NCBI RefSeq assembly: GCF_000150275.1
Contig: NW_002060948.1
Span: 1,858,918-1,922,917, forward strand
Source of the DNA: Trichoplax adhaerens
Taxonomy: Eukaryota > Animalia > Placozoa
Length of the DNA: 64,000 nt
Direction of reading: 5' to 3'
The position numbers and the translations under genes are program-made. Positions 3,284 to 63,361 of the stretch are shown one piece after another (positions within the stretch are counted from its first letter, which is position 1; each line of letters begins with the position of its first letter). A model generated the notes under the pieces. It was given only the letters and a program-made list of their open reading frames with translations. It was not told where the DNA came from and did not search any database.

Positions 3284-3333
3284 NNNNNNNNNNNNNNNNN
3301 NNNNNNNNNNNNNNNNNNNNNNNNNNNNNNNNN
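3284..3333. other. Assembly gap (50 N)
   Basis: Run of N inside the TM exon of gene A. Confidence 1.
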
Positions 3334-18300: not shown

Positions 18301-20263
18301 ACCTTTCTCACAGCGAGTTCCTGTCCAATCGTGTGGACAACTACAAAGATAGGTATTAGCAACAACCGTACATGTTGCATATGGATGTACACATGGGTTC
18401 GAAGCACATGCATTAGCTGAATAAAGAAGTACGATAGGTAGTTAGATATAACATCGAATAATTTCGAAGTGGCTTTAAATTATGTCAAGTGAAACCTTCC
18501 TTCAAAGGTACTGACCAACACAAATAGAGAATCAAAGTCATAGAAAGTAATAGCTAGATAAATATTATTTTAATACCATTTTCGCAATTTTTTCCTGTAT
18601 TCTGCGGATGACAGTTACAACTGTAAGCGTCTGGGCCAGCGTTGGCACAAGTTCCCCCATTTTTACATGGGCTACTTTGGCAACTATTTAAATCTGTACG
18701 TAGTCAAAAGATTAGTAATCGGACATTCTTCATTAGCTTATAATGTTATTAGCAGTCTACAGACTTTAGGCTGATAACAGGCTACAAATAACGAAAGTAA
18801 TATCGCAGTAATTTAAGTTAATTATTAAATGATTGTAAATTATACTACTAATTGATGATACATGATTCGTAATAAGCCGTGATTAGTACAGGTTTTATCC
18901 AGGCAATTAATACAGTTGTGTAAAAATGTGGATATACTGTAAATCTACTAATTAACTTTAACAATTTTAGTGAAGTCTACATAAGCATCTACGATGGTAT
19001 TAGTTAGTCCTTGGAGAATTACAGTCAAATGCTAATAACTCTCTGCTTGTATATTCTATACAGAAAGATAAGAAACAGTCCTTTGCAAGAACTTAGTCAC
19101 ATACTAATAACTCTCTACTCGTATATTAGACAAAGGAAGATAGGAATCAGCCCTTTAAAATAGCTTTAATATGCTATACGTATGGGATGTGGAATAAACG
19201 TCTAACACTGGATTAAGATAAGATCTCTTTTATAATTAAATATCGCGTAATCTGTTTACCTTGATTACAGTTTGAACCTGTCCATTGTGAACAACATTTA
19301 ACCTCAGCTTGAAAACTAAGAAATGATTTCTTGATTATTGGTCGTGTTCCTTCTAATCTATACTGAGATTTAGCACCAGAAACAAGATAAAGGCCGTGAC
19401 TGAATATATCTAATAGATCATCGGCACCTTCTTGAAAGTCCTTATCCATCACTTTAATATGGAGGTTTACATAACCCTATAGATTGTAAAAATTAAAATT
19501 TTTACTGCGTTGGTAAGTAAAACGACAGGAATTTAAACGACGGAATTTAAACTAATATAGTCGATAATATAATTAATGAAATATCTTATCTTAGTAAATT
19601 TACCGTATAGGATTGGATTGTAAAGTTAAGAGGGTTTGTTTGGCTTGTACTATTCATAACTTCACCAATAGAAAATGACACATTTTGACTCCTTTCCCAA
19701 TACTTGGTTGTAAAGCTACCAATAGTACAAGGATCGGTTGAAGTTTGGGTGTTTAGACAAATAATAAAGTAATATTCACAGGCAGAAAAATTGTCACATT
19801 TGTCTCCATTATAATTTCGTTCGTCCGGGTTCCAGTAATGATCAAATTGTAAAGTAAATTCAGCATGGCTAGTAGTAGAACAAGCGCTAGCCTAAATACA
19901 TACAAAGATTATAAAATAGAATAGGGCGATGAATATATTCGTTCTACCATTCTTTTAATAGTGTTGTTAGATTGATTCTACAGCAATAGAAATATTATAA
20001 CATTTAAAATAATTGTACTACTTCTACTTTCTACATATAATTTTATAGACTAGGAAAAACAGATAGCCCTGAAGTTTACTTTACATGATATAAATCTAGC
20101 ATCACTCCATTCGTGTATTATCCACAGAACAAGAAAAAAATTTTAAAAACAATATATTATCAGACCAATCAAAAATATCTTGTAGTCATTCCAAACTTAT
20201 TCGACTTACCTCAACAGATATTGTAAAGGCTAAAAGAAGCAATAATACAAACAAAACTTTCAT
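3334..20263 (-). CDS. Gene A: Jagged/Serrate-like type I membrane protein lacking an intact DSL (SP-C2/MNNL-~52 EGF-vWC-juxtamembrane-TM); +1 frameshift at ~7067-7070; 3' end runs into an assembly gap
   Basis: Hand-spliced GT-AG exons with consistent phases: 20210-20263 ([18 protein letters not shown]), 19604-19891, 19260-19476. Then 23 single-EGF exons: 18577-18693, 18303-18416, 17790-17906, 17569-17676, 17353-17469, 16706-16825, 16485-16604, 16251-16367, 15251-15367, 14593-14706, 14390-14506, 14139-14255, 13914-14030, 13606-13722, 13289-13402, 13002-13118, 12772-12882, 12566-12682, 12377-12490, 12172-12288, 11922-12035, 11630-11746, 11017-11130. Then 10465-10926, 10253-10366, 9360-9409, 8711-9266, 5966-7704, 4835-5208, 4645-4754, 4346-4561 (VWCGATYC), 4115-4252 ([18 protein letters not shown]), 3596-3731 and 3334-3394 (TM: [16 protein letters not shown]). 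Confidence 0.85.
3596..4754 (-). other. Gene A vWC/cysteine-rich and Jagged-type juxtamembrane domain exons
   Basis: [32 protein letters not shown]|VWCG...[12 protein letters not shown]...|[14 protein letters not shown] resembles Jagged DCNTCQC..G...CSKVWCG...GLTTEHICSELRNL. Confidence 0.85.
8065..8590. repeat. Intronic tandem repeat, ~171-bp unit, ~3 copies
   Basis: aagaatagcaaa...ggtc...gattta.tct..g.taat..atag...tggaattt...tttcaag recurs at ~8071, ~8242 and ~8414. Confidence 0.8.
19260..19891 (-). other. Gene A MNNL/C2 domain exons plus DSL stub
   Basis: [35 protein letters not shown]...PCTIGSFTT...NPLNF | [13 protein letters not shown]...[18 protein letters not shown] matches the Notch-ligand N-terminal pattern (N..G.C..C..F..CL..C..G..NP..F). 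Confidence 0.8.
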
Positions 20264-27486: not shown

Positions 27487-38905
<11,419 letters not shown>

Positions 38906-42217: not shown

Positions 42218-45200
42218 ATGAAACTGAATCGTTTAATCTATTTTTTCGCCTCAGTTTTCTTTCTATCGACGGCATCTACGGTAAGATTAGCTGATAATGA
42301 TTGACTCTAAGCATGATTATGTTTACTAAGTTGATGGATTATAATACAGTAATCATTTTGCTTCACGGTGAACCTCGTCTTTTAGCTGACAAATAAAATG
42401 CACAGTATTTATATAAATAGATAGTTTAAAATAATATTAAGATACATTTTAAGGTAGCATGGTATTTAAATACAATTCAAGATAATCCTACATCTAGAAG
42501 AGCATTCTATTATTCCTATTTCTACACGCATTTATAAAAAATTAGTCAAGAATTGTATAGAATTTTCTTCCTTTCTAAATCTTTATCTATAAAATAACGC
42601 AACTAATTTTATCCTGGACGTGCTCTCAGTTTACTATAAACCTTACGTTATAGTCCAATACTACAGTATCAATGTTAAGTTACAGAGTTCATTATCGTTA
42701 TTGATCCTTTTGAAATACCTGTCAAATAATTTCTTTCTTTTCCGTTACTTTCATTAACATCAACGTAGCTTATTAGTGACTATAAACGTTACGCCAACAA
42801 AGTAAACTTAATGATTGTACGATAATTAATTGCAGGTAGTTTGATTTATTTCACTAAGTATAGAAATTTTTAGATATTAGCTACAGAAAGCGATATTAAA
42901 GATTAATCGCCTTTCCAGTCTAATATATACTGATGGTAACATCTATACCTTATCAATATATTACTATTTCTGTTTCATTCAGGCTAATGCAACTTCCGTG
43001 CAGGCTAACATAAGCATGAAGTTAATAAGTTATCATAATCCTCAAGAGATATTATATAATGGCCAAAAGTGCGATACTTTCTCATCTTGTGACTATATAT
43101 TTAATTTTTGCGGCCGGAAAACTAACTCTGGACCATCATGCGTTTATGGGGATGTTACGACTAAATCGTTTGATAATGTTGGCGAGACGAAAACTTTTCA
43201 AGTGGGTGAGCAATTGACCAATGGGGCAATTACCATCACTAACCCATATAGCGCTCCAATTGTCGGACTATGGCCTGTAAGTTTACTAGTACCAATTAAT
43301 TAACGGCTAGCTACAATATAATTTATCTCAATATCAACTAATTATGCAGTATATCTAGGTTTCATCATACCCTGATAGTTATTTCATCCCAAATATATCG
43401 CCTTATTCTAAGCTAGAGATACTATTAGTAGATTGTAAATGATTTAGATATTTAGGAAGTAAAATATTATGTAAAATTAAAATATCTCATTTAAGTTTTA
43501 TAATTAAAATTAATGTTGGATTGCATCTAAGTTACAACAATAATATCCTTAACTAGCATGAAAGAAAAAAAAATGATTTACGATGATTTACGTACACATA
43601 AAGTCATAAACAAAGCGAATTCAAGAAATTTGTTTATAATATATCATGCATAGATAGTTAAAATTAGTTTAATAAGGAAACTTTAAAAGTAAAATAGGCC
43701 TAAGATATCAATAAATTGAGAGTTAAGATACTGTCCACTGTGGTTTCTTAAATTTGCTATTTCATAAAATCTATCATAATCGATTATTACTACAAATTAC
43801 AGTAAGAAATTGCAGAACTTGCTTCATCAAGCAGTAATCTGGCATTACTTAAACTACGTCCAGTTATCATGCACCTAGAGTAAATTAAGTATATGTTTCT
43901 CTAATCAAAATAGGCAAGCACTTCAAAGCAATAATTGAATTAACGTTATAAAAAAGTATGTGCCAGATCAATCATTTGCTCTGCATATGAGCTTATTAAT
44001 CATCAGTTCATATTCTACGATATTGGATGCAATATAATATTTATGTCCATGCATAGCATTTACTCCAGTTTGCTATTAGTTTCCAAACTTAACAGAATAT
44101 TTAAGCATCTGTTACGTTAGAACAGTTTTTGATTTCATTCTTTAAGTCTTTCAACTTTGACAAACAGAAAAGGAATCACTAGCAATTTGCGTGGATATTA
44201 TGATCAATCAACTCTATGTCAACATCAACTGGCGCATTTTATAAATTTCTGATACATCAGTTAATACCTTTTATATCTATTTTAATTTTAATAGGGCCAA
44301 TTCCAGCTCTTTATTAACGTTACCGATGAAGACTCATTCTTAGAAGTAGGCAATAATAGAGTCGATGATTTAACAAAAGATATTACCATATCGGCTGGTA
44401 TTAAGCAAACGATTACCATGACTGGAAGTCGCCCCACTAATCCATCTAGTTTTACATTCGAGATGGAAGTTAAATGTATAAATAGTTGGATGGGAAGCCT
44501 TTGCGATATAGGTATAATTAACTCACCGTATCTCTATTTCATTTAAGAAATAAAGATACTTCTCAATTTCCGTCAAAACTTTTGAGATTTCTAAATAGAA
44601 TATAGAACACTTATGGTAGCAAGCAAACTATTTCTTCCCTTCTTATTTACTTGTTCCTTCTTAATCCTTTCCAGATCTAATTAGCTGTCGCAGTTCACCA
44701 TGTCAAGGTAGAGGAAACTGCATAAACACTGCACCTAACGCTTATAAATGTCATTGCCTTACTGGATATACCGGTGTCAATTGTGAAACAAGTAATGCCG
44801 ATTTCTAGGATACATACATTTCCATTTTTTAATAAAATTTTGCAATATCTATTATCAATTACCAACAGTTTTTATTTCGTTCTTGTATTTTAATTGTCAC
44901 CTATGGACGCATTAAATACATTATTAACTCTCCGTTCTAGATATTGACGAATGTGCATCTGGACCTTGCAAACATATTTATTCCACCTGCATTGATTTGG
45001 TGAACGGTTATCGATGTGTCTGTCCATCTGATTGGACAGGAAAAAATTGTGATATAGGTTAGTAGCATTCTATTTACATTCGATAGGTAAGTATGCATTA
45101 CATTGCAAATCTTCTCGCAGATTTTGTATTTTACTAGCGTGGACTTTTAAATCCTATTGCGTATTCTATATATTGCATTTTAAGAGGATTAGATCAAATT

Positions 45201-48200
45201 TATTGATGATGACCAAATATTTATATGATTTTGAATACAATGTTATTAGATAACAATATATGCCGTATCAATAACCCATGTCTGAACGGTGCAACATGCA
45301 AATTTACCAATGTTAATCAATATTCATGTACCTGTCTTCCCGGATTTACAGGAAAAACTTGCGATAGTAAGAGTATATTTATTCTAGTATATTTAGATTT
45401 TAGGCTGTTACATATCATGGATCTAAAGTATCACTTGATAGCCATAGCATTGGCAATCTTATATGATATAGAATCTACGTTATATAAAATGTTGGCGTGT
45501 GTAAGCGCATGCAATTGGATCTAATATGTGGTTAACAGTAAACTAAAGACAAATTTGAGATCTTCATAAATAATATCAATTTCGTGGCTTTAAACTTTCT
45601 CAGTTGTAAATAGCACAAACATATTGATTCAAAGCACTCATAGTTTGAATGCTAAACTTTAAACTCATTAGCTTACAATGGTTGTCTCTCGGATCCATGC
45701 CTTCATAGAGGCAATTGTTCAACTGGAAGTAATAGTTATACCTGCCATTGCCCTCAAGATTGGTCTGGGACTCACTGTGAACAGGGTCTGTTATTCTTTT
45801 CAGCAAATATTCTCCAGTGACAATTAGTATATTCCACTATTGCACAAATTGATTAAATCTAAAATAATTAATATAATAAAATAGGCTAGACTCTAAATCG
45901 GTGATAATATGCAAAAACTGATCCATATAGTCTTCATCATCTCGTATTAAGTGTCCATCATTAAGTCAGCTTATTACACATATAACGTCACAGCCTTTTC
46001 ACTTTAATAGTCTTAATTTAATGAGAATCTTTGCTACGTTTGTTGATAGATCTTAGCCTATGTAGAACAAATTCTCCATGCCAAAACGGTGGAACTTGCC
46101 AATTTGTTAATGCAACCAGCTATCAATGTGTTTGCCCACAATATTATACTGGGAGTACCTGTCAATGTTAGTCTAGACATATTATAGCTTCTTAATTCTA
46201 CAACCATTATATCTAATATTAAAGTATCGATATTATATATGATCCATTTATTCAATTTCCGATGTTTGCAGCTCATATTCCTTGCCAATCCAATCCCTGT
46301 ATTGGTACTGGTTCAACTTGTGTGGATACTCCAAGTGGCTATGTGTGCCATTGTCCAGTTGATATGACAGGAACCAATTGTGATATAGGTTGCTTAATAA
46401 ATTAACCAATACGATGTATTTCACCCGTTATAATTACATACAAGCAAACATATAATTATCTGTAATACTACAGATGCCACATACCATCGTCGAATGGAAT
46501 CACAGATCGATAGTGTGATATAAGATCGTGTAGGATCAATAATGTGATACAAATTTTAAATAGCAGTTTTAGCCGCTAGGATAGTTGTGTATCATGAATG
46601 AATACTAATTTATTGTAAGAATAGGGATTAATGGAGATTTACGATATTAAGTGGCAATTTATTAATCTTTAATGTTTCATAGCTTAGTAATAAGGATTAA
46701 ATATAGTATTTTTGCTCCAATCATTCGTAACTCAACTTGAAATAATCAATTTTAGATACCAACGTATGCAGATCAAACAATCCTTGCCAGCACGGCTCAA
46801 CATGCGAAAATACAGGCCCTTCTACTTATCGATGCGTATGTCCATCTCTATATTCAGGCCAAAATTGTGAAAGTAAGAAAACTTTGTAATGTAACTTAGT
46901 TACTCTAGTCATATCAATCAACCAAGTTGCATTTCATTAAACTAATTTTTTATCGAAACCAAATTTCATGATATTACTAATTTTATTATTTCTTTCACTA
47001 TGTTATCCAACTATCATCTAGATTATACACCGTGCATGTCAAATCCTTGCCAACATGTCTACGCTACATGCGTAAATAACCCACACAATTATACTTGCCA
47101 ATGCCCTGGCGATTGGATAGGTTATAATTGCGAGATAGGTTAGTTAGAAGTGGAATTGCTGAACTTATATTGTACGTGTAATTCGCGATAAAGTAAAAAA
47201 TGATTAAGCTAAGATCAAATTTTTACGTTTACAAATAATTTGGTTACTCATATTTATTTAAATAATTAAAACATAATTTAAAAGTACAGTATCTTATTAA
47301 TTACAGCAAACCATACTTTGTATAAGAAATTATTAAATATAAGCTTTCCACCTTACGAAAGTCATTATAGAGAGCATAAAGTCTATTGATAGATCAGTCT
47401 CGTCTAATATTTAGTAAGGTTATGATAATAAAAGATATGGAATATTTCAGCTTATATTTAGCAATACAGTCCAAAATACTGTGATTTAGCCATGATTACC
47501 AGAATAAGAATTGTAACAGTTTATTGATCGGTTCTTACTTCTAATACAGATGCAAATATATGTCGAATGAATAACCCTTGTGTAAATGGCGGGATCTGCA
47601 CATCGCATAAAGCAGGAAAATACCAATGCGAATGCCCGGATAACTATAACGGCACTAATTGTGAAAGTATGATTTTTATATTCAATACTCTTTGGTTAAC
47701 TCAAGTATCAATCGATCTATGACGGCTTTATCGCCATATATCCTCTACTTGATAATTCTTGTAATGTACGATCTACTAAATTTCCATAGATCCTGTATAT
47801 AGGTTGTAAGGATGTAAAGCATATTAAACCAGCTCAAATTAACAATTATAGTCTGCTTCTAAATAGAATATTCCTGGTTTATTACTAGATTACAACGACT
47901 GCTTATCGAGACCTTGCAATCATATTTACGCAACATGTGTGGATTTGCCGGGTACCAATTATTCTTGCATTTGTCCTTCTGACTGGACAGGAAGAAATTG
48001 CGATAAAGGTATTCTACAGAAACTATTATTCTGAAATAGCCATAGCCTAGTAATCGATTTAAGTCATTTTTGATCGAATCGGATTTTGAGCATTTTTAGT
48101 GAAATTTGATACTTTGCCTTTATCAATTGAGCTTCTTTGTGATAGTACTCGCATACATTATTGCTTAGGTGCAATTATTCCGTAGTATATCAACATCACA

Positions 48201-51200
48201 TGTTAGCGAAACATAGCCAACGCAAGTATTATATCCCATCTAGTCTGATGTTACCCTAATCGAATAAATCATTCATTATTATAGATTTAAATAGCTGCAG
48301 ATCCAATCCATGTCAATTTGGAGGTACTTGCACCAGTATTGGTCCTGATGTCTATGCATGTAGTTGTCCTGTTGGATATACTGGCAAAAATTGTCAAACA
48401 GGTAGCAGATTGGTATCTATAAAATGATTTTCCAAATCAAAATGATTAGCTTTAATATAACGGAAATCTACTAAAGCAGGCATTGGCATAATTGTTGGGG
48501 CTTTACAAGTCATTAGAGAAGATACAGGAATAAAAAACTTAAAAAATGAATTAACAACTCATTAAATAATCGCTTGTACAGTTAAAATACGTTTCTATTT
48601 GCTTGATGCATTCTTATTAGAAACAGTTACCGAGACCATTAGTTTTAGATTTATTTATTTCTTGATTTACTCATTTAGCAAACAAGGGCTCCAAAAGCTG
48701 CTAGAATGATAAAATGATTGCAGCTTCAGATTTTATTCTCTTTCACCAATAATAACTGCAATTCCTACGTAACCTATGTTTGATCAACCTATTTCAAATT
48801 TCTCATTAACTTTAGATATCAATCACTGCCTTGGACATGCTTGTTTAAACGGTGCAACCTGTATCGATGGTGTAACTTCATATACTTGCTCGTGCAATTC
48901 TAACTGGACAGGTTCTGTCTGTGATCAAGGTAAGATAAATTATAATATCACGTTTGATTAAAAGTAGGGGATAAATATACTCTATCTCAGATAAGTGCTG
49001 TACTAAAAGTTATCACCTATTTTAATAGCAATATGTAGAACAGGATGCAATCTATTGCATGGCAACTGTCATAACAGCCCGATGCAGTGCTTGTAAGTTA
49101 ATATTGGAAACTTGTTAACTTCAATTAATGCATTATTCAATTTATTAGCATTAGGACTTATATATATAATAATACAACCGATTAGTATAATGTTAATAGA
49201 AACCTTGACACTTTCTAAACAAGATGCATTAATGGCTGGACTGGAAATACTTGCAACACTTGCGTTAAAAGAGAAGGCTGTACAGGTCCGTTTACTACTC
49301 ATAAAAGTGTTTGAAATGTTATTGATTTAACATCCCGAATGCGTTCTTTGGCTAGCATTTGATAAAATTCCTCCGCCGTGGCAACGTTTTCTTAAATTAT
49401 ATTATTTGTCCATCAATATTGTGATATTACATGTTCAGTATTATTGCAATTCATTGATTGCCCCATTACGACCATTAATGTAGAGATTATATCACACGTA
49501 CAGTAAGAGTATCTACTCGTCTTCGTATTTTTCGTTTAGTAACATTGAACATGTTCAGTACTATTGCAATTAATTCGTTACCCCATCGTAACCATTAAAA
49601 GGGATATATTGTACGTAGGGTAAGATTATCTACTCATCTCATTTATACTTTTCGTTCAGTAACATTGAGTATGTTTAGTACTATTACAATTTATTCCGTG
49701 CCTCGTCGTAACCATTAAAGGGGGTTCTAAATGCACGTAACATAAGACTATCTACTCGTCTTATTCATTTTTTTCGTTTGATAACATTGGTATGTACAGC
49801 ATTGTAGCAATTCATTTGTTACCCTATCGTAACCATAAAAGGGGTAGATATAAACGTAATGTAAAGACTATCTACTCATCTTATTTGCATTTTTCGTTTG
49901 ATAAAATTTAGCCAATGGCTACTGTGTTAATGCTAATGAATGTATCTGTAGAGATCATTACAGTGGTCCAAATTGTCAATATGGTTAGTATTCTGTTGGT
50001 TAATATCATGATCATGATCATCAATAGGATATTTAAATTTTTGACTTAATTCGGATTAATTTACTGTGATAGATAATAATAAATGCAGACTGGGACCTTG
50101 TCAAAATGGAGGAAACTGTACTAATGTCTTACCTGATAGCTATTCTTGTGGTTGTTTGCCAGGTTTTACTGGTAGCAATTGCAATACAAGTACGTTGATG
50201 CCATTTATTGTCATAGTACTGGTAAATTCAATATGTGCTATTACAAAAACAATTTATTCAATATAATATCATCTTGCTGCATATGATACTTTCATAATCA
50301 ATAGACCGATACTTTATTAGTTTTTCTTTGTTTTACTATATCTATATTAGCACTTTCATTAAGTCATACTTTAGCATATATATTTGATAAATATCCATGT
50401 CTGTCTGGACTATTATGTCATCGTGCATTAGCACGTCCAGTAAGTCGTACGTTAATTTATATATTTGACAAATATTTATGTCTGCCTTTACTATTATGTT
50501 ACTGTGCATTAGCATACTCAGTAAGTCATATGTTATTTTATATATCTGGCAAAACATTCATATCTGTTTTAACTATTATGTCACTGTACTATTGTAACGT
50601 TGTTTGCAGTTAGCTAATATCTGCAAGACACAAAATTATCAGCTAGAAAACTGTATTCAATTGTTCTTTATTCGATTGTAGTTCATGAAAACTCTACGAA
50701 TTAGATAAATAGCTCTAGATTATTAAGTTTTATAGGCTAGACTAAGCTGCTGCATATTGCAATTATTAATGTAGGTTTAAAGGGTAATATTTGTATGTTT
50801 CTCCGTAGATCTAAATTTTTTACCTTTGATATAACAGATATCAATGAATGCTCCTCAAACCCTTGCGATAATAATGCTACTTGTAGCGATCGAGTAAATG
50901 GCTTCCTATGCTTATGCAATGTAGGCTTTAATGGCACTAACTGCGAAAATGGTAGGTACAAATACAGATCCAGACAGGTTATGCGATTGATGATCATTAT
51001 GATCTGCATACTTAAAGGTTGAGACTATTTGCAAACGAGGGAAAGATCATGTTTCTAATATGATCATTCTAATCTATTTCATTTAGATAATAATGCCTGT
51101 AGAATTTCTCCATGTCAGAATGAAGGAAATTGTTCTGACATTGTACCCAATAAATATAAGTGTGACTGTCCTAATGGTTTCAATGGAACTAACTGCGAAA

Positions 51201-54200
51201 ATAGTTAGTAACATCACAGTCTAATTTTAAGATTGGCTTATATTACAGTCAACTACTGTAATAATGTATATCATAGCTTCTCGTCATTAACTTGAAAAAT
51301 TTGTTATAAATGCAGTGTTCTAAACTAGAAATAACGATTATTTCAGATATCAACGAATGTCATACCAAACCCTGCCTAAATTCAGGAACCTGCATCGATG
51401 ACATTAATAAATTTACGTGCCACTGCACAACTAATTGGACGGGCACCCTTTGCGAAAATGGTAAACAGCTTTTTCTTGATATGATCTACGCATTACTATG
51501 CTGTCTGAAAAGCAAATCATTGTTATATACAGTAATTACAACTTGTACTTAGAATCGATCACTGATCTAAAGTAATTCTACGCTATTTGTTGAATTTATA
51601 GATCTAAATTCATGTCGTAATAATCCATGCGTAAATGGTGCTACTTGTCAAAATACCGGACTGAATACGTATAACTGCAGTTGTGCACCTGGTTTCACCG
51701 GCTCGCAATGCGGAACGGGTTGGTTGATTATTTTGTGTAGCTAAATATATTTTTAAAAACTATCGTTATGCATTTTATTCTTACATACTCTATTATAGTG
51801 TATGGTTAAAATCTCTATCATTCCTATCGGTAACGATATCAGGATGCATCTTTTCTAAAATACCATATGCAAAAGCATGTATATTTTACTTCATATAGCT
51901 GCACGATTGCACACAGTAGCTTTGATATCTCAATGAAATGTTAATTTTAAGCTTCCTAACGACATCCTGATCATGTATTTATTCCAAGTACCATCCTTCT
52001 CCTCAAAAATCGGAAATAATATTAACAAAATTTTATCTTGATAGGCATTAATGAATGTTCATCTAATCCGTGTGTAAGTGGGCATGGTACTTGTGACGAT
52101 GCCGTTAATCGCTATACCTGCTTGTGTTCAGCTGAATGGACAGGAGTCCATTGCGAAAATGGTTTGTACGCGTGAATTTGATTATTATACCTTGCAATAT
52201 TTGTTCATCACAGAGCTCGTGTATAGGAAATAGTGTCTATAGTGAGAACCCCATGATCATAAGTAAGACGCGGCGCTAGACCTGAGTGGATTAGCGATGT
52301 CAAGGATATTACATTTAGGCGTTAAGATAGTCGAGTGCCGCTAGTGAATAACTTTAGAGAAGATACCTGTAGCTTTAAGTGATAATGCGGAAGGAATTTC
52401 AGTCTGAGATCTACTTGTTTATAGCTTATATGGTCTAAGTTTGCTATTGTAACATTTAGCAATAATTTTAAATAACAAACTCTTTTTATCTACTAATATT
52501 GGAAAAGGATTTATTGCGGAACTGTTCCCTAGTAGGGATAAAAACAGTGCTTTATTACAAACTCATACTTGGGGCGACTATAACATGATTAAGCTTTCTA
52601 ATTCTGTCCTAACAGATCTAAACAGCTGTCGAAGTAATCCATGTCAAAACAGTGCTACCTGCACCAACACAGGCCCTAACAGCTATAACTGTACCTGCCA
52701 TGCCGGCTTTACTGGAAAAAACTGCGAAACAAGTAAGTATAATAAACACACTATAACTAGATTTATTATTTGCGATTGCTAAGTATTAGAATATCCTATC
52801 CAGTGGATGATAAATATTTTTATCACAGATATTAACGAATGCTTGTCGCAGCCTTGCCGAAATAGCGGCACGTGTATCGATAGAGTTAATCGTTTCAGTT
52901 GTCAGTGTTCTAGAAGGTGGACTGGAACTACTTGTACTGGAGGTATGCTATTACTCTGCTAAAGTTAACTGTGAAATTTGATAAGAAATGGTTTATGTGC
53001 TCATTACAAAAACTAATTCATAGCTATTGCAATTTCTAAGCGATTTGACATGAATCGTATAAGTATGATAAACTTTCTTCAACAGCACTACTTTTACATC
53101 AAGCAGACAAGTATCATAAATCATTTAGAATACATATATATATCCTTAAATATCGAAAAGTCCAAGTTGACACATTTCAACTCTATCATAAGCCTAAAAT
53201 TTAAGGTCCGGCAGCTTCATTCAAATGTTAAAGGAATACGTACATTTATTGGGTTCCCATCTCTATGCCAATATTCTTCTGTTAAGTGTCTATATAAGTG
53301 CCTTATGGGGCTATCATTAAAGCTGAGGGCACAGCTAAATCTATACGGATATTTTCAATTTGAATCAGTTTGAGGGTTCCGGAGGTCATACATAACTACT
53401 CTACGCTGGATTCGTGGGTAGTAACGATATGCTAACACCATATAATTTTGCTTACAAACCGTAAATAAATAAAGTGCTAAACAATAAATTTCAAAGAAAA
53501 TTATCACTTAAATTATTTAGAACTCTCGACCACCCCATCGGATAACTTACAACATGCTTTACAATTATAATGTTACCATAAGAATATAATTATTTAGCTA
53601 ATCTAATCCAGTACCTTACCACAACTAATAGAATCGATTGAATATTTTCAGACTTGCAATATTGTAACAATATACCATGCGATAATGAAGGATTATGCAG
53701 CAATACTGGCATTAATACTTATTGGTGTCATTGTAGCCCTGGTTATACTGGCCAAAATTGTCAAACAGGTAAAATTGCAAGTGATTTATTAAATATTTGA
53801 TCGCTTAGTCTCTTTAACTTGAACTAATTTTACGTTCATTCTAATTTAAACCGTAAATTCGACTGCGTTCGGTCGTAGATATCAACGAATGTGTCTCCAA
53901 TCCATGCCAGAATAAGGGCAATTGTACCGATTTCGTTAATAAATTTAATTGTACATGCGATGCTGGATTTACAGGAAAGTTTTGCCAGGTTAACATCGAT
54001 GAATGCCTATCATCGCCGTGTATAAATGGCGGACTATGTATGGATGGAATCGATCAATATAACTGTCAGTGTCCAGCAGGTTTTACTGGTATCCACTGTG
54101 AAATTAATATCAACGAATGTGCAAGTAATCCATGCATCAACAGCTACAGATGCCGTGATTCCATAGATGGCTACTTTTGTGACTGTAACATTGGTTTTAC

Positions 54201-57200
54201 TGGCTCAAACTGTGAAACAAATATTAATGAATGTGCCAGCCAGCCTTGCTTGAATAATGCAATGTGCAATGATTCCATTAATAATTATTCATGTATTTGC
54301 AATTCTGGCTTTACGGGAATATATTGTGAAACCAATATTAACGAATGCCTATCGATGCCATGCCGTAATAACGGCACCTGTATCGATCTGATTAATGCTT
54401 ATGTGTGTCAATGTTTTAACACAGGCTTTACTGGACTTAACTGTGAAAGCAGTGAGTTTATAAATTCTTCTATCACTAATAGAAGTTAATATGAGACGAA
54501 TGCTAAAAAACGATATAATCTTGGTTTTCCTAGCTTTATAAGACAGTTTACGATTAAAAATTTATTATATAGATTAGATTAAATAATCATATTTATTATC
54601 TTCATAGATATCGATAACTGCCAATCAGCTATCTGCTACCATAATGGAACATGTATCGATGAGATAAGAGATTATCATTGCAATTGTACAAGTGGCTGGG
54701 AAGGCAAGCAATGCCTGCAAGGTAGTAAAACTTAAAATACCTATACAATATAAGAGTAATTGTATCAAAAACGACGCACTGATATTAAACTTATATACAT
54801 TCAAATTAATTTTTCAATTCTCTATCTTGTATAATCAGAAACCAATGAATGTTTATCCAACCCCTGCTTCCATGATAGTACCTGCATCGATATGTTTGAC
54901 ATGTACCGGTGCAATTGTACTAACGGATATAACGGCACAAACTGCGAAAGTGAAATTAACGAATGTGCTTCTTCGCCGTGTCTTCATGGCGGTTTCTGCG
55001 AAAATGCAATTGGTAGCTTTATTTGCCACTGCGGTTTTGATGGCTTTACTGGTGACCGATGTGAAATCAGTTAGTTTCGAAAATAATTAGAAATGTGATA
55101 ATATTTACTGATGGACTTATACACATTGTTCAAAGATTAACACTGTTGAATACATTTATCTATTATTTTTCTGCAATGATCTTGGTTAAGATTCCACTTT
55201 TTAACGAATCAGTTGTAATAACGTATAATCGGAAAAGCATGTCTACCCTTATTATGTTTTTACTGATAGACTTATGCATACTTTATTATTTATAGATTCA
55301 TAGATTAATACTGTACATTTATCTATTATTTTTCTAATCTAATTAAGGCTAAAACTTCACTTTTTAATAAATTAGTATATAACGACGTATAATCTGATAT
55401 ACATGTTTACCGATAAGCGTTTCTATGCCACTGCTAGACTACGTATTCGATAGCATATTCGCTCAATCAAATGATGTTGATTCCTAATTTTTTATCTCTT
55501 CATCTTTTAAAAATTAGATATTGATGATTGCATCAATAGTCCATGCAATAATAATGGGACATGCATCGATTTAGTGAACGATTTTAGGTGTAATTGTGCT
55601 AATGGCTACTCTGGAAAACGCTGTGATATTAATATCGACGAATGTCAATCTCAACCTTGTATGCATAATGGAACATGCATTGATCAAATTCATAGTTATC
55701 GATGTAATTGCCTTGGTGGATATACTGGCAATGCTTGTGCTATCAACATTAACGAATGTTCATCCAGTCCGTGTCAAAATAATGCTAGCTGTGTGGATAT
55801 TATCGATGAATATATCTGTGATTGTGCAAACGGCTTTACGGGTACTGTATGTGAGACTAATATCAACGAATGTCGATCGCAACCTTGCAGTAATGGGGCA
55901 ACTTGCATTGACATGATTGATGGTTATAAATGCAACTGCAAGAATGGATTTACTGGTATTACTTGCGGTATTAACATTAAAGAATGTTTATCGCAACCTT
56001 GCCAAAATAATGGCACCTGCATTGATATGGTCAACAGATATATTTGCAATTGTAACCCTGGTTATACTGGAATTCATTGCCAAACAGATATCAATGAATG
56101 CCAATCACAACCATGTCAAAATAATGGTACTTGCTTCGATTTAATCAATTACTTTAGTTGTAACTGTATTGCTGGATATACTGGACCTACCTGTCAAATT
56201 AACATTAATGAATGCCAATCGCATCCATGTCAGAACAATGCTACCTGCCAAGATATGGTCAATGGTTATAATTGCCATTGCGCCGACGGATATACTGGAA
56301 ATACTTGCGATATCGATATTAACGAATGTCAATCTCAACCGTGTATTCATAATGGAACTTGTATCGATTTAATAGACGAATTTAATTGCATTTGCGCTGA
56401 TGGCTATACCGGAGTAATGTGCCAAACAGACATTAACGAATGTCAATCTGTGCCTTGCTTGAATAATGGAACTTGTCTGGTAAGTCAAATGGTTTATTGC
56501 ATAGATCAAAGTCTTAGATTAGTTAAGTGTATTTTAAAAATAGCCACCAATTATCCTTTCCGGTCGTTTTATGACTGTAGTGTAATATGTCCGATATATC
56601 GAATGGTTTATTGTATAGACAAAAGTATTGATTAGTGAAGGCTATTTTATAAATAGCTACCAATGAATCTTTCTGATCGTTTTATGACTATCACTTTTAG
56701 GATTTGATTGGTAGCTATCAATGCCAATGTCAACCTGGTTACACTGGATTACAGTGCCAAGTCGATATCAACGAATGCGCTAGCAATCCTTGCGTGAATA
56801 GTGGAACTTGTTTGGATCAAATCAATCAATATCAGTGCAGATGTAATCCGGGCTATACTGGAACCCAATGTCAAACTGAAATTAATGAATGTCAATCAAC
56901 TCCATGCCTTAACGGGGCAATTTGTAATGATTACGTTAATTACTATAATTGCACCTGTTTACCTGGTTTTACTGGTCAATATTGTGAAATTGAAATCAAC
57001 GAATGTAATTCTTCACCTTGTCGTCACGGTTAGTCATTTCTATCATTTTGAGCTAGCGTTAATTCAGTAGTTCTCAATCTTTTCGGGACAAAAGCCTCTT
57101 TTTATGCTATACAGTACTTAGTCTATTTAATGCAATATGTTCCAACCTAAAATCAGCAGGATTAGAGATTTATGTTAGCTATTTTCAGCATATGATGGAA

Positions 57201-60200
57201 ATAGTATCAACCTATCGCCTTTTTTAAGTCAAGAAATAATTTAAAGAGATTTATGATTGTTTTTTGACTTATAGGTGGAACATGCAACGATTTCATCAAT
57301 GCTTACAACTGTACATGCATCCCTGGCTACACTGGAATACATTGCGAAATCGACATCGATGAATGTGCGAGTAATCCATGCGTTAACTCCATTCTTTGCG
57401 CGAACCTTTTGGATAAATATCAATGCTATTGCAAGCAGGGCTTTACCGGCGTTAATTGTCAAACTAATATTAACGAATGCGCTTCAAATCCATGTCAAAA
57501 TTCTGGTACTTGTACTGATTACGTCAACTATTATCAATGTACCTGCATGCCAGGATATACTGGTAGTACTTGTGAAGTGAATATTAATGAATGTGCCAGT
57601 GCACCATGTCGCTATGGCGGTACATGTCTAGATCTAGTCAATGGCTATAACTGCACATGTGAAGGTGGTTATAGTGGAGCAGATTGTCAGATTAATATTA
57701 ATGAATGCTCGAGTATGCCTTGTTTAAATGGTGCTACTTGTATCGATAATTTAGATGCATTTGATTGTACATGTGCAGCTGGGTTTACTGGTGTAATATG
57801 TGAAACAAATATTAATGATTGCAACCCTAATCCATGTCGCAATAATGGAACCTGTACAGATTTGATTAATGACTACCATTGCAACTGTTTACCTGGCATC
57901 CAAGGCAAATCATGCATTGATAGCTGTAATGGTCAACCTTGCCAGCATAATGGGACTTGCCAAGATCAACACGATTCTTATAAGTGCTATTGTGCAATAG
58001 GATATACAGGAATCGATTGTGAAATTAATATTGATGAATGCAGCAGCAGTCCTTGTTTGCATGGTGCGTGTTTTGATGGTATAGATGGTTATCGATGCTT
58101 ATGCATTGTTGGTTATACTGGAACTAACTGCATTACAGAAATTGATGAATGTTCTGATCAACCGTGTATTAATGGAACATGTCGAGATAGAATTAACGAT
58201 TTTTATTGCAACTGCACACCTGGCTTCGATGGAAAAAGATGTCAAAATGACATCAACGAATGCCTATCCAATCCTTGTAGAAATGATGGCACTTGTATTG
58301 ATAATATTAACAGCTACCAATGTACATGCTTTGGTTATACTGGTGTCAATTGTGAGACAGAAATTGACGAATGTGCTAGTTCACCATGTACTTCTAATGG
58401 CGTTTGTGTCAACAGGATTGGTAGCTATTCTTGCGCTTGTAAGCCAGGATTTACTGGTAGTAAATGTCAAACGAATATTAACGAATGTGCATCATCGCCT
58501 TGCGTGCATGGATCTTGTGTCGATTCCGTCTTTGGCTATAAATGCAATTGTAATGCAGGCTATACTGGTGGTCATTGCCAGAATGAAATCAATGAGTGTG
58601 CTTTTGTGCATTGTTTTAACGGTAACTGTATCGATTTAATTGCAAATTATACTTGTAATTGTACAGCTGGCTATACTGGCCGATATTGCCAATTCGATAT
58701 TAACGAATGCCAAAGTAATCCATGCCAAAATGGAGCAACATGCGCTGATTTAATCAATCGTTATCAGTGCTACTGCCAATACGGTTTTACTGGCACTCAA
58801 TGTGAAACCAACATCAACGAATGTAGCAGTAATCCATGTCGTCATAGAGGAACATGCCATGATCAAATCAATGGCTATTCTTGTTCTTGTCCAGTTGGTT
58901 ATACTGGAACAGTGTGCCAAACGGATATCAATGAATGCCAGCCTAATCCATGCCATAACCAGGGACAGTGTACAGATAAAATAAATGGATACAATTGCAC
59001 TTGCCTGTAAGTTTTTTATGCTATGCAACTGCTTCAAATAGTCAGTTTCAAGAAGCTCTGCAGTACCTTACCAGTTAAAAATAGATTCAAATAATTTATT
59101 TTTTACTATACCATAAGAAGTAACTTTAGTTCATTAACATGCCAAAACAGGGACCATGTACAGATAAAATAAATGCTCATAATTGTACTTGCATGTGAGT
59201 TATTTTATACAATATATTTACTCCAAATAGATCCGTTTCAATAAGCTCTAAAGTATCTTACCAGTTAAAGAATATACCAATATAAATAGTTTATTCTCTT
59301 ACTATAAGTAACCATCGTTCAATAACATACCAAAACCGGGGACAGAATATAAAATAAAAATAAATGGCTGTAATTTCATTTGCTTTTAAGATCTTTTATC
59401 AATCCAACTGCTTCAAATAGATCTGTTTCTATGAGCTCTAATGCGTCTTAATAGTTAAAGAAATACATAAACAGTTTTAGTCTCTTACTATAAGAAGTAA
59501 CCTTAGTTCATTAAGACTACCATTTCAGATATATTACTAAAGCTTTGATTTTGTTGCATTAGACCTGGTTTCACCGGTGTAACATGCGAGACCAATATTA
59601 ACGAATGTGCTAGCAATCCATGCGTTCATGCATTTAGCTGTGTTGATCAAGTTAATAACGTGCACTGTAATTGCCAACCTGGTTACCATGGCCACTTCTG
59701 CCAGATTCAAACAAATGAATGTTTATCATCTCCATGTGTTAATGGCACTTGTATCGACCAAATTAACTCATATCATTGCAATTGCTCAACTGGTTTTACT
59801 GGCAGTAATTGCGACACTGATATCAACTATTGCACTAATGTCAATTGTAATAATCACGGTAACTGCATCGATTCACTAACTACCTATCATTGCCAATGTA
59901 ATCCAGGCTATACTGGCAAAGATTGTCAAACAGGTAACATATGCAATAGATGCCTGCATTTCTCTACGAAAATTTGTTAGCTGTTTGCAATATCTGATTC
60001 AATTTCATCTTAAACTTTATTAATACTTATCAACTTCAAATTTTAAAGTCGGTACTATTAAGAATAATAGAAGTCGATTTCTGCTAGTTAACAAATGATA
60101 TATCCGGTGTATTAAGATTTTATTCCTATGCTAAAGATCACCTTTAAGAAATTAGATTAAATAGCTTAGGTAACGTAATGGATATTAGTAAGCGCAATAT

Positions 60201-63200
60201 TTACCGAATAGTTATTCCCGATAGTCAGAATATCGGACATCAGATTAAATAATTACCTTCAGCAGCCATCCCATTAAACATAGTTTATAAAATACTTCAA
60301 ATTATTCATCTATGTGATATAATAAGTTTAATCTAGCTTTTGAACAGTATTAAATGATAGTATTACTCTTCATAGATTATATATCATAATAAATAGCTTG
60401 ATTTATACTAGTAGTTAACGACAAAGTATGCGAATATAGACGATAAATAAGCCAACATTGATGGAAATAGATATATAAATTCTGATATTACCTCGAAGAT
60501 GATAATCAATGTAAATGGCACGGTTATGAAAATTTAGTAAATATCAAATAGTATTGAACTAGATAATGATATCACTTTTCTAACTGGAAAGTGCTATAGA
60601 TATTCCATACATACATCATGTCTTCAGCTTCAGGATATTTTAGTATTACATTGCATTTGTTGGACGAGATTTACCGCTCTACAAATTAGTTGCTATCATT
60701 CATCTCATTTTATTTCCAATTATATAGAAATTGACCACTGCTTAAGCAATCCATGTGATTCTAATGGCAATTGTATTAATAATCCAACTGGTTATAAGTG
60801 TTATTGTTATACCGGCTTTACAGGATTAGATTGCACTTTAGGTAAGAACTAAGCTAATTACAATTATATGTCATCAAAATAAGATAATATTATTGTAACA
60901 TTGCTATCGTTAGATAGGATAAATATTGCCATGCTAGTCATCTAAATCTTGCAAGATAACTTAATAACCTCCAAAATCAACAATAAATCTATCCTGTTCT
61001 TCAATTATCTACTTTTTTAGTTACCTTATAATAATATATTTCTATTATTAGGTAGAATAAATATTGTCAAACTAGTCATTTAAAAGCTACAAGACAACTT
61101 ATTAACCTCTAAAATCAACTATGAATTTATCTTGTTATTAAATATATCCAACTTTTAGTTACTTGTGTCAGTAATGGAATAGCCTATCAAAATGGTAGCA
61201 GCTGGCTTAGTGATTGCAATAAATGTACCTGCGAAGGAGGACAAAAAAGTTGTACAATGGTAAATTTTCTTTTAATACCTATTCCAACGATAGTAATATT
61301 TATCATTAAAGATAGTGAATTTATTAATCTCGTCCTGTATATTATTTTTATCCACTAATTGCTCTGTAGATTTGGTGCGGCCCAACAGCTTGCAATCCCT
61401 CACTACAAGGCCAATGTGGACAAAATGATACCTGCCAATCGTTATCGCAAAATGAATGTGTTAAGCCACCTTGCTCAACTGCCAGTTTCTGCTCAAAAAG
61501 TGAATTAGGATTAGATTGCCTTAACTATGTTGGCCATTCACCAAGCAACTGTTACCGACAGTCATTTCTAATCGGCCATAATAGCCTTACAAATGTAAGA
61601 GATTATAGCATGATTATACTAGCTTAAGGTCTCAACCGAGCTGAATGTTGAACGTTAGCTCGATTACATGAAATTTTTTAATCAGCGTTTCATATATCTA
61701 CTCGCACATCAGGGGACAACCATCACTGAATTATGCAATGAATTACGATCCGTGAATGTATTGAAAAGTTACTCAAATAACGGCAGCCTCATTTTGCAAT
61801 GTAAAATCGAACAGAAAACATCAGAGGGAATTCGAATTGCATTAGCCACGGTAAAATTTTAGCCTACGAGAGTATATACAGCAAGCTTATTATTTACGTT
61901 AAAAACAATAAAATAAAATATTTAAAACTTTGCGCAAACTGTCCATATCTTCTTCGTATTTCTATTATATATTAATACAACTGTAGTGATCTATTTAAGC
62001 ATCAAAGTACTATCTAACTCATCACATCCAAATCCTAGCTGCATAAAGAATACATATCTTAGATATGCTATCTCTAAATACATATTGCTCTACATAATGC
62101 CATGTTACGTTACACTACTGTATCTAAATATAATGATAGCGCCAGGTATTAATTATATTTATCTATAAGTAATCGCGTGTATATATATATACACAACTAC
62201 ACATTAATTACACAAAAGTATTTGTAGATTTTTTAACGTTATTGACTACAATTTCTACTATCGCTAACAGATCTTTTCTCTCTATCTTTTAATTTGTAGA
62301 AATCCGCTTCCGGAAGTCAATACGCCCAGTCAGCATTGACAGCATTATTGTTAAGCCTTCAGACAGGACAAGGGAATAATCCACCAGTTCAGCTATTACC
62401 CATCAAAGCGGAAGGTATTCATGTTAACCTTATACGTTATCATCAAATTTGAAGACATTTTATGTTTAGCGTGCTAAAATATCGATCAGGATATGTCTAT
62501 GATAGATTAAATAGCTAAAGTTTCGATTTTAGGAATCAAATAGTCATTTCATCTTTAAAACTTCGAAATGGAATTTAATAATTCTCTCATGTTGTAGGTT
62601 TCAACGCTACTGTTATCGGTATCATCATCGCTATTGCTATTTTTCTGCTTGTAGCTGTCTTTTTGTATCGACGACGTCGACGTAAACAAACTGCTCAAAA
62701 GAATTCTGTATCTTTCGAGCAACAGTTATCGTCTATCGCTCCAGCTACAAGTATAACTAATCCACTGTACAAAGAAGGAGATCTGGATTTTCCAGATCTG
62801 CCTGCTCGGAAAGAAAGCCGTTTCGATAGTCCTGACCTCGACGGTGACGAGCAAGTTCAATTGCATAGTACCAGAAGTAAATTTAGCGTTGATAGCTTTG
62901 CTAAGCGAAATCAAAACTATTCTAGTACCTATTTTGAGAATCCTGCCATCAATGATAACGAAAGTGCTCACCAGCAATACCCTGAAACTAGCGTACCTAA
63001 TAACGGTATAGTAACCAATACAAATGGCAAGGACGGTAGCCTCTATAAATCAGTTAACGGCAAAGGTGATAACGACAAGGTTACATTATTTATGACAAAG
63101 AAATCATCTTCCAAAATGCGTGAACGAAGTGATAGCTTACCTACCGATACCACGACTTTACAAAAAGGAAATGGCCTTCAAACTGCCGACGATTATTATT

Positions 63201-63361
63201 ATCAAAATTACGATGATCAATCATTGGTTAGTGGAAACAGAAGGAGGAAGAGATCGAGCATAATGAAGAGCATGAGCGATATTTACAATCATGTTACATC
63301 AAACGCATCCAAGAAGAAGTCCTTCAGGGACAGCCATGATGAAGGTTCACTTATCAATTAA
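42218..63361 (+). CDS. Gene C: giant Jagged/Serrate-like type I membrane protein (SP-C2/MNNL-12 EGF-DOS-~48 EGF-vWC-juxtamembrane-TM-~230 aa tail), ~2994 aa, no intact DSL
   Basis: Exons: 42218-42280, 42983-43276, 44295-44511, 44675-44791, 44941-45057, 45250-45366, 45672-45785, 46050-46166, 46272-46388, 46756-46872, 47022-47138, 47550-47666, 47889-48008, 48285-48401, 48816-48929, 49029-49092, 49224-49285, 49912-49983, 50073-50189, 50838-50951, 51087-51203, 51347-51460, 51602-51718, 52045-52161, 52616-52732, 52829-52942, 53652-53768, 53879-54451, 54608-54721, 54839-55069, 55518-56479, 56701-57028, 57275-59006, 59563-59933, 60728-60841, 61159-61259, 61370-61594, 61713-61850, 62300-62414, 62598-63361. 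Lengths sum to 8985 nt with an open frame. Confidence 0.88.
42983..44511 (+). other. Gene C MNNL/C2 domain exons plus DSL stub
   Basis: [32 protein letters not shown]...CVYG...[12 protein letters not shown] | [13 protein letters not shown]...[15 protein letters not shown]. Confidence 0.85.
49029..49983 (+). other. DOS motif (atypical EGF1-EGF2 of Delta/Jagged) encoded by three small exons of gene C
   Basis: Spliced product [22 protein letters not shown]|[20 protein letters not shown]|[24 protein letters not shown] aligns Cys-for-Cys with Jagged1 AICRQGCSPKHGSC...[34 protein letters not shown] (recalled sequence). Confidence 0.85.
49425..49910. repeat. Intronic tandem repeat, ~120-bp unit, ~4 copies
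   Basis: atgttcagta.tattgcaat...accatta...tatctactc.tc...ttttcgtt recurs at ~49431, 49551, 49671 and 49791. Confidence 0.9.
50345..50590. repeat. Intronic tandem repeat, 81-bp unit, 3 copies
   Basis: attagca...taagtc.ta...tatatat...actattatgt at 50346, 50427 and 50508. Confidence 0.85.
58945..59515 (+). repeat. ~190-bp tandem triplication spanning an exon 3' end and donor site
   Basis: catgcc..aac.ggga...cagataaaataaatg...aattg.acttgc.tgt.agtt...caaatag...agttaaa...agtaac at ~58949, ~59138 and ~59325. Confidence 0.85.
61159..62414 (+). other. Gene C vWC/cysteine-rich and juxtamembrane domain exons
   Basis: [32 protein letters not shown]|IWCGP...CVKPPC...|[18 protein letters not shown]. Confidence 0.85.

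Follow-up and report, generated by a model that had tools for sequence, protein, structure and literature searches.

How can a pair of epidermal growth factor (EGF) repeats that in Notch ligands adjoins the DSL domain come to lie twelve exons downstream of what is left of that domain? The question is raised by a stretch of 64,000 nucleotides (nt) of the Trichoplax adhaerens genome (G000:C1409:1858918-1922917, on contig NW_002060948.1; the whole of it is called the window below), which has a G+C content of 32% and carries three paralogous genes, A, B, and C, with 118 EGF repeats in total. The pair lies in gene C (42218-63361, plus strand). The reading that we favor, and hold to be probable, is that gene C is a member of a placozoan family that descends from a Notch ligand of Jagged-like type, with a deletion in DSL, an insertion of EGF exons into the intron between the remaining DSL stub and EGF1, turnover of the resulting array, and loss of the pair in genes A and B and in a further paralogue, Z. 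We examined it against the genome (105.6 Mb, 1414 contigs), with the consensus of Komatsu et al. (2008; PMC2504490) as the yardstick for the DOS motif of EGF1-2 and the genome's own canonical Delta gene as the partner for intron comparison.

A preliminary description of this DNA had placed three small exons with a DOS-like cysteine pattern at 49029-49983, behind twelve phase-1 EGF exons, and that is the arrangement we found. Upstream of the array, an exon at 44295..44511 (plus strand, as are all gene C exons; phase 0 in, phase 1 out) encodes the C-terminal half of the C2 (MNNL) domain and a DSL stub, in which alignment with the canonical Delta exon leaves the last disulfide loop only. Twelve single-EGF exons follow (44675..48929), recognized by their exon bounds, AG/GT sites, and an EGF regular expression; they are 114–120 nt each, with lengths divisible by three and phase 1 at both ends, and EGF3-like and calcium-binding-like types alternate across them. 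Cysteine frameworks and splice sites are intact in all 12. Then come exon a (49029..49092; phase 1 in, phase 2 out), with cysteines 1–4 of EGF1; exon b (49224..49285; phase 2 in, phase 1 out), with the end of EGF1 and the start of EGF2 across a GW.G..C..C junction; and exon c (49912..49983; phase 1 at both ends), with the remainder of EGF2. All three have AG/GT splice sites, and their translations give the cysteine framework of Delta/Jagged EGF1-2. Right behind the pair stands an EGF3-like exon (50073..50189), which matches best the units that come first behind DOS in the paralogues D and G, described below.

Is the pair related to EGF1-2 of Delta and Jagged by descent? The genome has a single canonical DSL ligand, a Delta (G000:C1403, loci L014/L015), which scores 71 bits on the DSL model and 105 bits on MNNL. 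Its exon carrying the end of C2 and DSL stops in phase 1, two codons past the last DSL cysteine; the next exon stops in phase 2 within the C-x-C of EGF1, and EGF2 closes in phase 1. All three boundaries recur in gene C, each in the phase that it has in Delta, and the first of them holds the twelve EGF exons. The phase-2 intron inside the C-x of EGF1, already remarked on in the preliminary description, is present and coincides in place and phase with that of Delta. Many classical ligand genes carry an intron immediately after DSL (PMC2504490), and the two introns that serve as the gene-structure criterion of DSL ligands, one after DSL and one inside the EGF1 C-x-C, are both found in gene C. Because two introns of the pair, the one ahead of EGF1 and the one inside its C-x-C, match those of Delta in position and phase, the twelve EGF exons occupy the old DSL|EGF1 intron.

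In six frames across the window, the GW.G..C..C junction between EGF1 and EGF2 and the A-I-C start occurred once each. A 30-place degenerate DNA pattern of the junction gave 16 matches genome-wide, against two for the reversed pattern used as control, and 11 of the 16 fell in Delta or in genes of the gene C family. Pfam and PDB searches of gene C were run exon by exon, and the statistics for exons of 20–23 residues are weak. The only PDB chains matched by exon a were two of Jagged-2, where EGF1 begins (E 0.34 and 0.38); those matched by exon b were all Delta-like or Jagged-1, with 0.005 as the best E-value; and the PDB matches of exon c were generic. A homology of the gene C pair to Delta/Jagged EGF1-2, diverged as the pair is, is supported at the level of sequence and gene structure.

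The family to which gene C belongs comprises about a dozen related heads in the genome, found with two C2 exons as queries, and ten further loci were retrieved. Its giant genes lie on contig C1409, and a short-headed branch, the K genes, lies at G000:C1411:2200000-2323000 (loci L030-L033). Every member bearing the pair has it in the same three-exon structure, including an EGF2 intron that Delta lacks. What varies is the distance: the EGFs that separate stub and pair number 0 in K1, 7 in gene D, 12 in C, 21 in F, 24 in G, and 25 in E, and in K2–K4 no EGF was seen between the two.

The pair had been described at first as a full DOS motif, a claim that did not survive comparison with the published consensus. 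The start of EGF1 conforms to C-X(3)-C-X(3,8)-C, with spacings of 3 and 6 in exon a. Between cysteines 3 and 4, where the consensus has X(2,5), there are six residues, as in all family members, and the site passes only if the spacing is relaxed to X(2,6). The position [KVER] inside C-x-C is taken by a leucine, encoded by a codon split between 49091-49092 and 49224. Farther on, the spacing C-X(10,12)-C is kept as C-X(11)-C, and the proline that the consensus places after X(1,3) is absent; the loop of exon c, where C-X(1,4)-W-X(1,4)-C is expected in EGF2, is without tryptophan. The placement departs from the rule as well: According to Komatsu et al., a DOS motif always comes directly after DSL (PMC2504490), whereas twelve EGF exons and 4.5 kb separate stub and pair in gene C.

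The preliminary description had named failure of a profile search to assign the small exons to DOS/EGF1-2 as a ground for refutation. Exons a and b matched the Jagged- and Delta-like PDB chains, as said; the Pfam models EGF_DL_JAG and JAG1-like_EGF2 gave no match to exon c of gene C at E up to 10, and the Delta/Jagged EGF2 models matched none of genes D–G either. On the same two models the Delta exon scored 41.4 and 32.5 bits, respectively, and the K paralogues reached 15–24 bits on the Delta/Jagged EGF2 models (18–24 bits on EGF_DL_JAG). Exon c and its counterparts in genes E, F, and G matched the generic EGF_2 (24.1 bits in gene C), and the counterpart in gene D matched only a weak Teneurin-type EGF. 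On its sequence, then, the pair is to be called a diverged homologue of EGF1-2 and not a full DOS.

These results bear on the thought that the resemblance is generic, that is, that an EGF_2-type pair was born within the EGF array and is no homologue of Delta/Jagged EGF1-2. The purely generic matches of exon c, the four consensus failures, and the weak per-exon E-values are what such an origin would lead one to expect. We nonetheless regard it as very improbable: Two intron positions with their phases are shared with Delta, exons a and b match only Jagged- and Delta-like chains in PDB, and the exon behind the pair is EGF3-like, as in Delta. Moreover, the three-exon cassette of the K genes, which stands behind the stub and scores 18–24 bits on EGF_DL_JAG, bridges to Delta at 41 bits.

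What, then, became of the DSL domain? The Pfam domain (PF01414) has six cysteines, of which the gene C stub retains two; relative to Delta, 33 residues are gone in frame. In a genome scan with PF01414, only the canonical Delta passed the cut-off, and the window yielded no match. The identical 33-residue gap was seen in all 11 stub-bearing genes aligned, three K genes included, which points to a single ancestral in-frame deletion. Because genes have the deletion whether their pair is adjacent or displaced, loss of DSL would precede the insertion of EGFs. The preliminary description had held that the expanding array split the receptor-binding surface. This has to be given up: The DSL core was already gone, so there was no intact surface for the array to split, and the three K genes aligned have the same deletion with their DOS abutting the stub.

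The same description had let an EGF cassette expand inside the DSL–DOS intron of gene C. The slot is indeed that of Delta's phase-1 DSL|EGF1 intron, but the event was not specific to gene C, being shared by D, E, F, and G. Because five genes share the displaced pair, the insertion would be older than the divergence of D, E, F, G, and C. Variation in the slot between stub and pair is the pattern expected from exon duplication inside an intron, and the paralogues are partly collinear at the first pre-DOS and first post-DOS units and not in the interior ones. A different route to an internal pair would be duplication of a DOS-led block followed by loss of the first copy, with no EGF copying into the stub|EGF1 intron at all. 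K1 and K2 have two tandem DOS cassettes directly behind the stub, the three-exon cassette is in phase 1 at both ends and able to duplicate, and the gene C EGFs on both sides of the pair share the alternating types. We consider this route unlikely, however, given that the intermediate, stub–DOS–EGFs–DOS, exists in no gene and that no DOS remnant lies beside the stub of any giant gene. In addition, the first two pre-DOS units look common to the giant genes, the DOS-less A and Z among them, an impression gained by eye that the unit comparison supports only in part.

The displacement might also be undone in the transcript. Joining 44511 to 49029, both in phase 1, would restore a K-like head of C2, stub, and DOS, with the twelve exons serving as a regulated spacer. 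All twelve are symmetric phase-1 exons with lengths that are multiples of three, any subset of which could be skipped in frame, and the adjacent layout does exist in the K genes. Phase compatibility of this kind, however, is true of nearly any EGF array and is no evidence, and the twelve exons have kept intact cysteine frameworks and splice sites; we think exon skipping decidedly unlikely as an explanation. We keep to the insertion of EGF exons into the stub|EGF1 intron.

Are the small exons still in use? Among genes C–G, mean pairwise identity is 60%–64% for the pair exons and 40%–42% for the C2 exons, and with its better conservation the pair probably is. The contrary proposal is that the three exons are unspliced relics (pseudo-exons), or that the whole of gene C is decaying. 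A visibly decayed member, gene H, does occur in the family, and a local tandem repeat has added to the length of the EGF2 intron of gene C; Tandem Repeats Finder (TRF) places it at 49431..49908 (120 bp × 4, 75% matches, no strand); the repeat fills the EGF2-splitting intron, which measures 626 nt with it, and a search of the whole genome found no second copy. Set against this are cysteines, frames, and splice sites that are intact over ∼70 gene C exons, and a pair that is the best-conserved part among five paralogues. Decay on either scale strikes us as extremely improbable, and gene C has the appearance of an intact gene, with a giant type-I membrane protein as its product.

Genes A and B raise the converse question of where their pair went. 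In line with the preliminary description, six-frame signatures and tblastn brought up neither a signature nor a remnant of it in either gene. The stub exons lie at 19264..19476 (gene A, minus strand) and 30230..30451 (gene B, plus strand), and in both genes EGF exons come directly next, with no DOS-type pair. A low-stringency tblastn of genes A and B with the DOS exons of eight genes yielded no DOS remnant beyond the stub and ordinary EGF exons. Gene Z is without the pair as well. Because Delta, the K genes, and genes C–G all carry the pair, we read its absence from A, B, and Z as loss, by parsimony only. Unit-by-unit best matches gave no diagonal between the EGF arrays of A and C that would place a deletion point in A.

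The ancestry of the family is indicated by the other end of its genes. A, B, and C all close with a VWC-like exon, a cysteine-rich WCGP exon, an exon resembling the Jagged-1 juxtamembrane region, a transmembrane (TM) helix, and a tail; the Jagged-type C-terminal exons lie at 4100-4776 (gene A, minus strand), 37055-37636 (gene B, plus strand), and 61125-61859 (gene C, plus strand). The VWC model scores 24.3 bits on the first of two exons in gene C (cut-off 27.6, exon level). PF23575, the ferredoxin-like JAG1 juxtamembrane model, gives gene C 20.6 bits at the exon and 18.6 bits in the genome scan (cut-off 27); genome-wide it matches genes E and C only, both below cut-off. The WCGP-type exon occurs in A, B, C, D, and E. 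From the VWC, WCGP-type, and JAG1-type exons at the C-termini of A, B, and C, a putative Jagged-like ancestor of the family is supported. The earlier claim of derivation from a true Jagged stands to that extent, and its companion, that A and B lost DOS altogether, stands as a matter of parsimony only. Comparative studies report placozoans to lack Jagged (PMC2770060, PMC12166595), one of the two noting the combination of EGF and VWC in Trichoplax; our literature search found no paper describing this family.

The history that we propose has four steps. An in-frame loss of 33 DSL residues in the ancestor of the whole family would have left the last loop. In the ancestor of the giant genes, phase-1 exons of the EGF3/EGF4 type would then have been copied into the phase-1 stub|EGF1 intron. 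The arrays would subsequently have grown and shrunk separately in each gene, to between 7 and 25 units (12 in gene C), and the pair would finally have been lost from genes A, B, and Z. Several points weigh against this reading. The pair departs from the published DOS consensus at four positions and is matched by none of Pfam's Delta/Jagged EGF2 models; exon c, taken alone, is a generic EGF_2. With queries of only 20 residues, the PDB E-values of the single exons are weak (0.005 to 0.34), and the VWC, JAG1, and gene C MNNL scores all lie under the Pfam cut-offs at exon level. The use of the three small and twelve EGF exons of gene C is deduced from conservation and splice sites only. Finally, in a tree of the C2 N-terminal exon only the K1–K2 and E/F/G/H groupings are supported; it neither orders the duplications nor gives a count of the DOS losses.

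What might such a protein do? With the DSL core gone and twelve EGFs between C2 and the pair, gene C would not present the contiguous C2–DSL–EGF1-3 surface of an activating ligand, and its product is more likely a long adhesive or Notch-modulating surface protein. Conservation of the pair suggests that it retains a binding role, either in DSL-independent contact with Notch EGFs or in adhesion. In mammalian ligands, DSL is essential, and EGF1-2 with DOS, or MNNL, supports it in Notch binding (PMC6986876, PMC2504490); for DOS-only proteins, a DSL-independent or co-ligand action on Notch has been proposed (PMC2504490). By analogy, the pair could be a DSL-independent Notch-binding module and the giant proteins co-ligands, or modulators in cis or trans, beside a Delta that supplies DSL. 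We give this little credence. If it were true, the arrangement would be bipartite, as proposed for the DSL-only and DOS-only ligands of Caenorhabditis elegans, how far a lipid-binding C2 tip stands from the Notch-binding site would depend on the variable EGF array, and the Jagged-type architecture would be older than the cnidarian–bilaterian ancestor.

The remainder of gene C completes a type-I membrane protein with a long EGF array. Its first coding exon (42218..42280), identified by an open reading frame and a donor site, has a start codon, a stretch resembling a hydrophobic signal peptide, and a phase-0 donor. The N-terminal half of C2 follows at 42983..43276, where Pfam MNNL stays below cut-off and tblastn links A, B, and C; exon scores on MNNL (PF07657) are 17.3 bits for gene C, 31.5 for B, and 22.8 for A, on an exon that holds half a domain (cut-off 22.5). 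Behind the EGF3-like exon, ∼43 further EGF repeats extend over 50838..60834, in single-EGF exons to 53768 and multi-EGF exons after that, which brings gene C to 56 EGF units, 12 ahead of the pair and ∼44 behind it. The Jagged-type ectodomain exons (VWC-like, cysteine-rich WCGP, and JAG1-like, assigned from sub-cut-off Pfam scores and genome matches) span 61125..61859. The last exon (62582..63361) encodes the TM helix, located by a hydropathy scan, a basic stop-transfer sequence, a cytoplasmic tail of ∼230 residues, and the stop codon; helix and tail take up 62582-63358.

Elsewhere in the window, gene A runs on the minus strand from ∼19.9 kb down to 3.3 kb and gene B on the plus strand from 29.2 to 41 kb. 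Gene A is interrupted toward its 3′ end, close to the presumed TM exon, by an assembly gap of 50 N (3284-3333).

Just past the window's end, gene D (G000:C1409:1924000-1935000, minus strand, loci L019 and L020) is the tail-to-tail neighbor of gene C; its stub and its three-exon DOS-type pair are separated by 7 EGF exons, VWC/WCGP exons are present, and the C2 N-terminal exon carries an insert of ∼40 residues. Genes E and F (G000:C1409:4258000-4274000 and 4294000-4310000, loci L021-L024) have near-identical 5′ halves, and gene E contains almost identical copies of a 3-EGF unit (near 4270256 and 4268216); the repeats and the likeness of E and F indicate recent segmental and tandem exon duplication. 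Downstream of the EGF exons of gene F, behind calcium-binding ones, locus L023 (G000:C1409:4294000-4296138, minus strand) holds a long open frame of another domain type, which could be a separate gene or an alternative C-terminus of gene F. Gene H (G000:C1409:4279000-4287300, minus strand, locus L027), between E and F, has many EGF cysteines replaced and is probably a pseudogene; no DOS-type pair was found in it. The K genes run from the stub through one or two DOS-type pairs and one EGF to FN3-like exons and a TM helix. A protein search with the C2 N-terminal exon returned 14 matches, 12 of them exon-sized fragments and two spurious repeat proteins, and no full-length model.

A contig from another placozoan sample (Logan SRR30664517, contig L016; 1-357, 3625-5202) contains a stretch orthologous to the head of gene C. 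The two stub exons are 61% identical, and in the contig an EGF3-like exon comes next; the contig stops one exon past the stub, before the pair. A TM-plus-tail exon of an upstream gene precedes the head, as gene B precedes C, and local gene order seems to be conserved between this contig and the window. When the open frame surrounding the post-DOS EGF3 exon was used as the query, a word search gave no candidate for the pair in other placozoans.

In textbook Notch ligands, C2, DSL, and EGF1-3 form one contiguous surface. The placozoan family, in an animal that branched off early, departs from that arrangement, breaking both the contiguous-surface rule and the rule of Komatsu et al. that DOS follows DSL, and it is a natural experiment on the roles of the EGF1-2 pair and the C2 domain when DSL is gone. 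Despite DSL loss and displacement, no part of the head is better conserved than the pair. Two comparative studies have Jagged arising only in the cnidarian–bilaterian ancestor (PMC2770060, PMC12166595); C2, an EGF1-2 pair, VWC, and a Jagged-type juxtamembrane region together in a placozoan bear on that origin. The family would also be a clean case of protein growth through duplication of symmetric phase-1 exons within one ancestral intron.

How does gene C compare with the known systems? Jagged and Serrate consist of C2/MNNL, DSL, EGF1-2 with DOS, 14–16 EGFs, a VWC-like region, and a TM segment. Gene C resembles them in its probable N-terminal C2/MNNL, its atypical EGF1-2 followed by an EGF3-like repeat and a long EGF array, and its VWC-like, WCGP, and JAG1-like juxtamembrane exons, single TM helix, and tail. 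It differs in the deleted DSL core, in the twelve EGFs between C2 and the pair, in the loss of the P, W, and [KVER] positions of DOS, and in having ∼56 canonical EGFs versus ∼16.

The Delta of the same genome shares with gene C the C2/MNNL exon (with a score below cut-off in gene C), the phase-1 end after DSL, the phase-2 intron in C-x-C, and an EGF3-like next exon. Unlike gene C, it has kept DSL in full (71 bits), and EGF_DL_JAG recognizes its EGF2 (41 bits); it has no exon between DSL and EGF1, no EGF2 intron, and no VWC. DLK1, DLK2, and the OSM-11-type proteins of C. elegans likewise bear a DOS-type element without a working DSL domain (PMC2504490). They are small proteins that lack C2 and carry the motif N-terminally, in their first two EGFs, whereas the pair of gene C is internal to a giant C2 protein and fails the strict consensus. 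Closest at hand are the sister genes (D, E, F, and G; K1–K4; and A, B, and Z), which are built of the same alternating EGF exon types and differ from gene C in how many EGFs separate stub and pair, in the presence of the pair, and in a C-terminus that is of the VWC/Jagged type in some and of the FN3 type in others.

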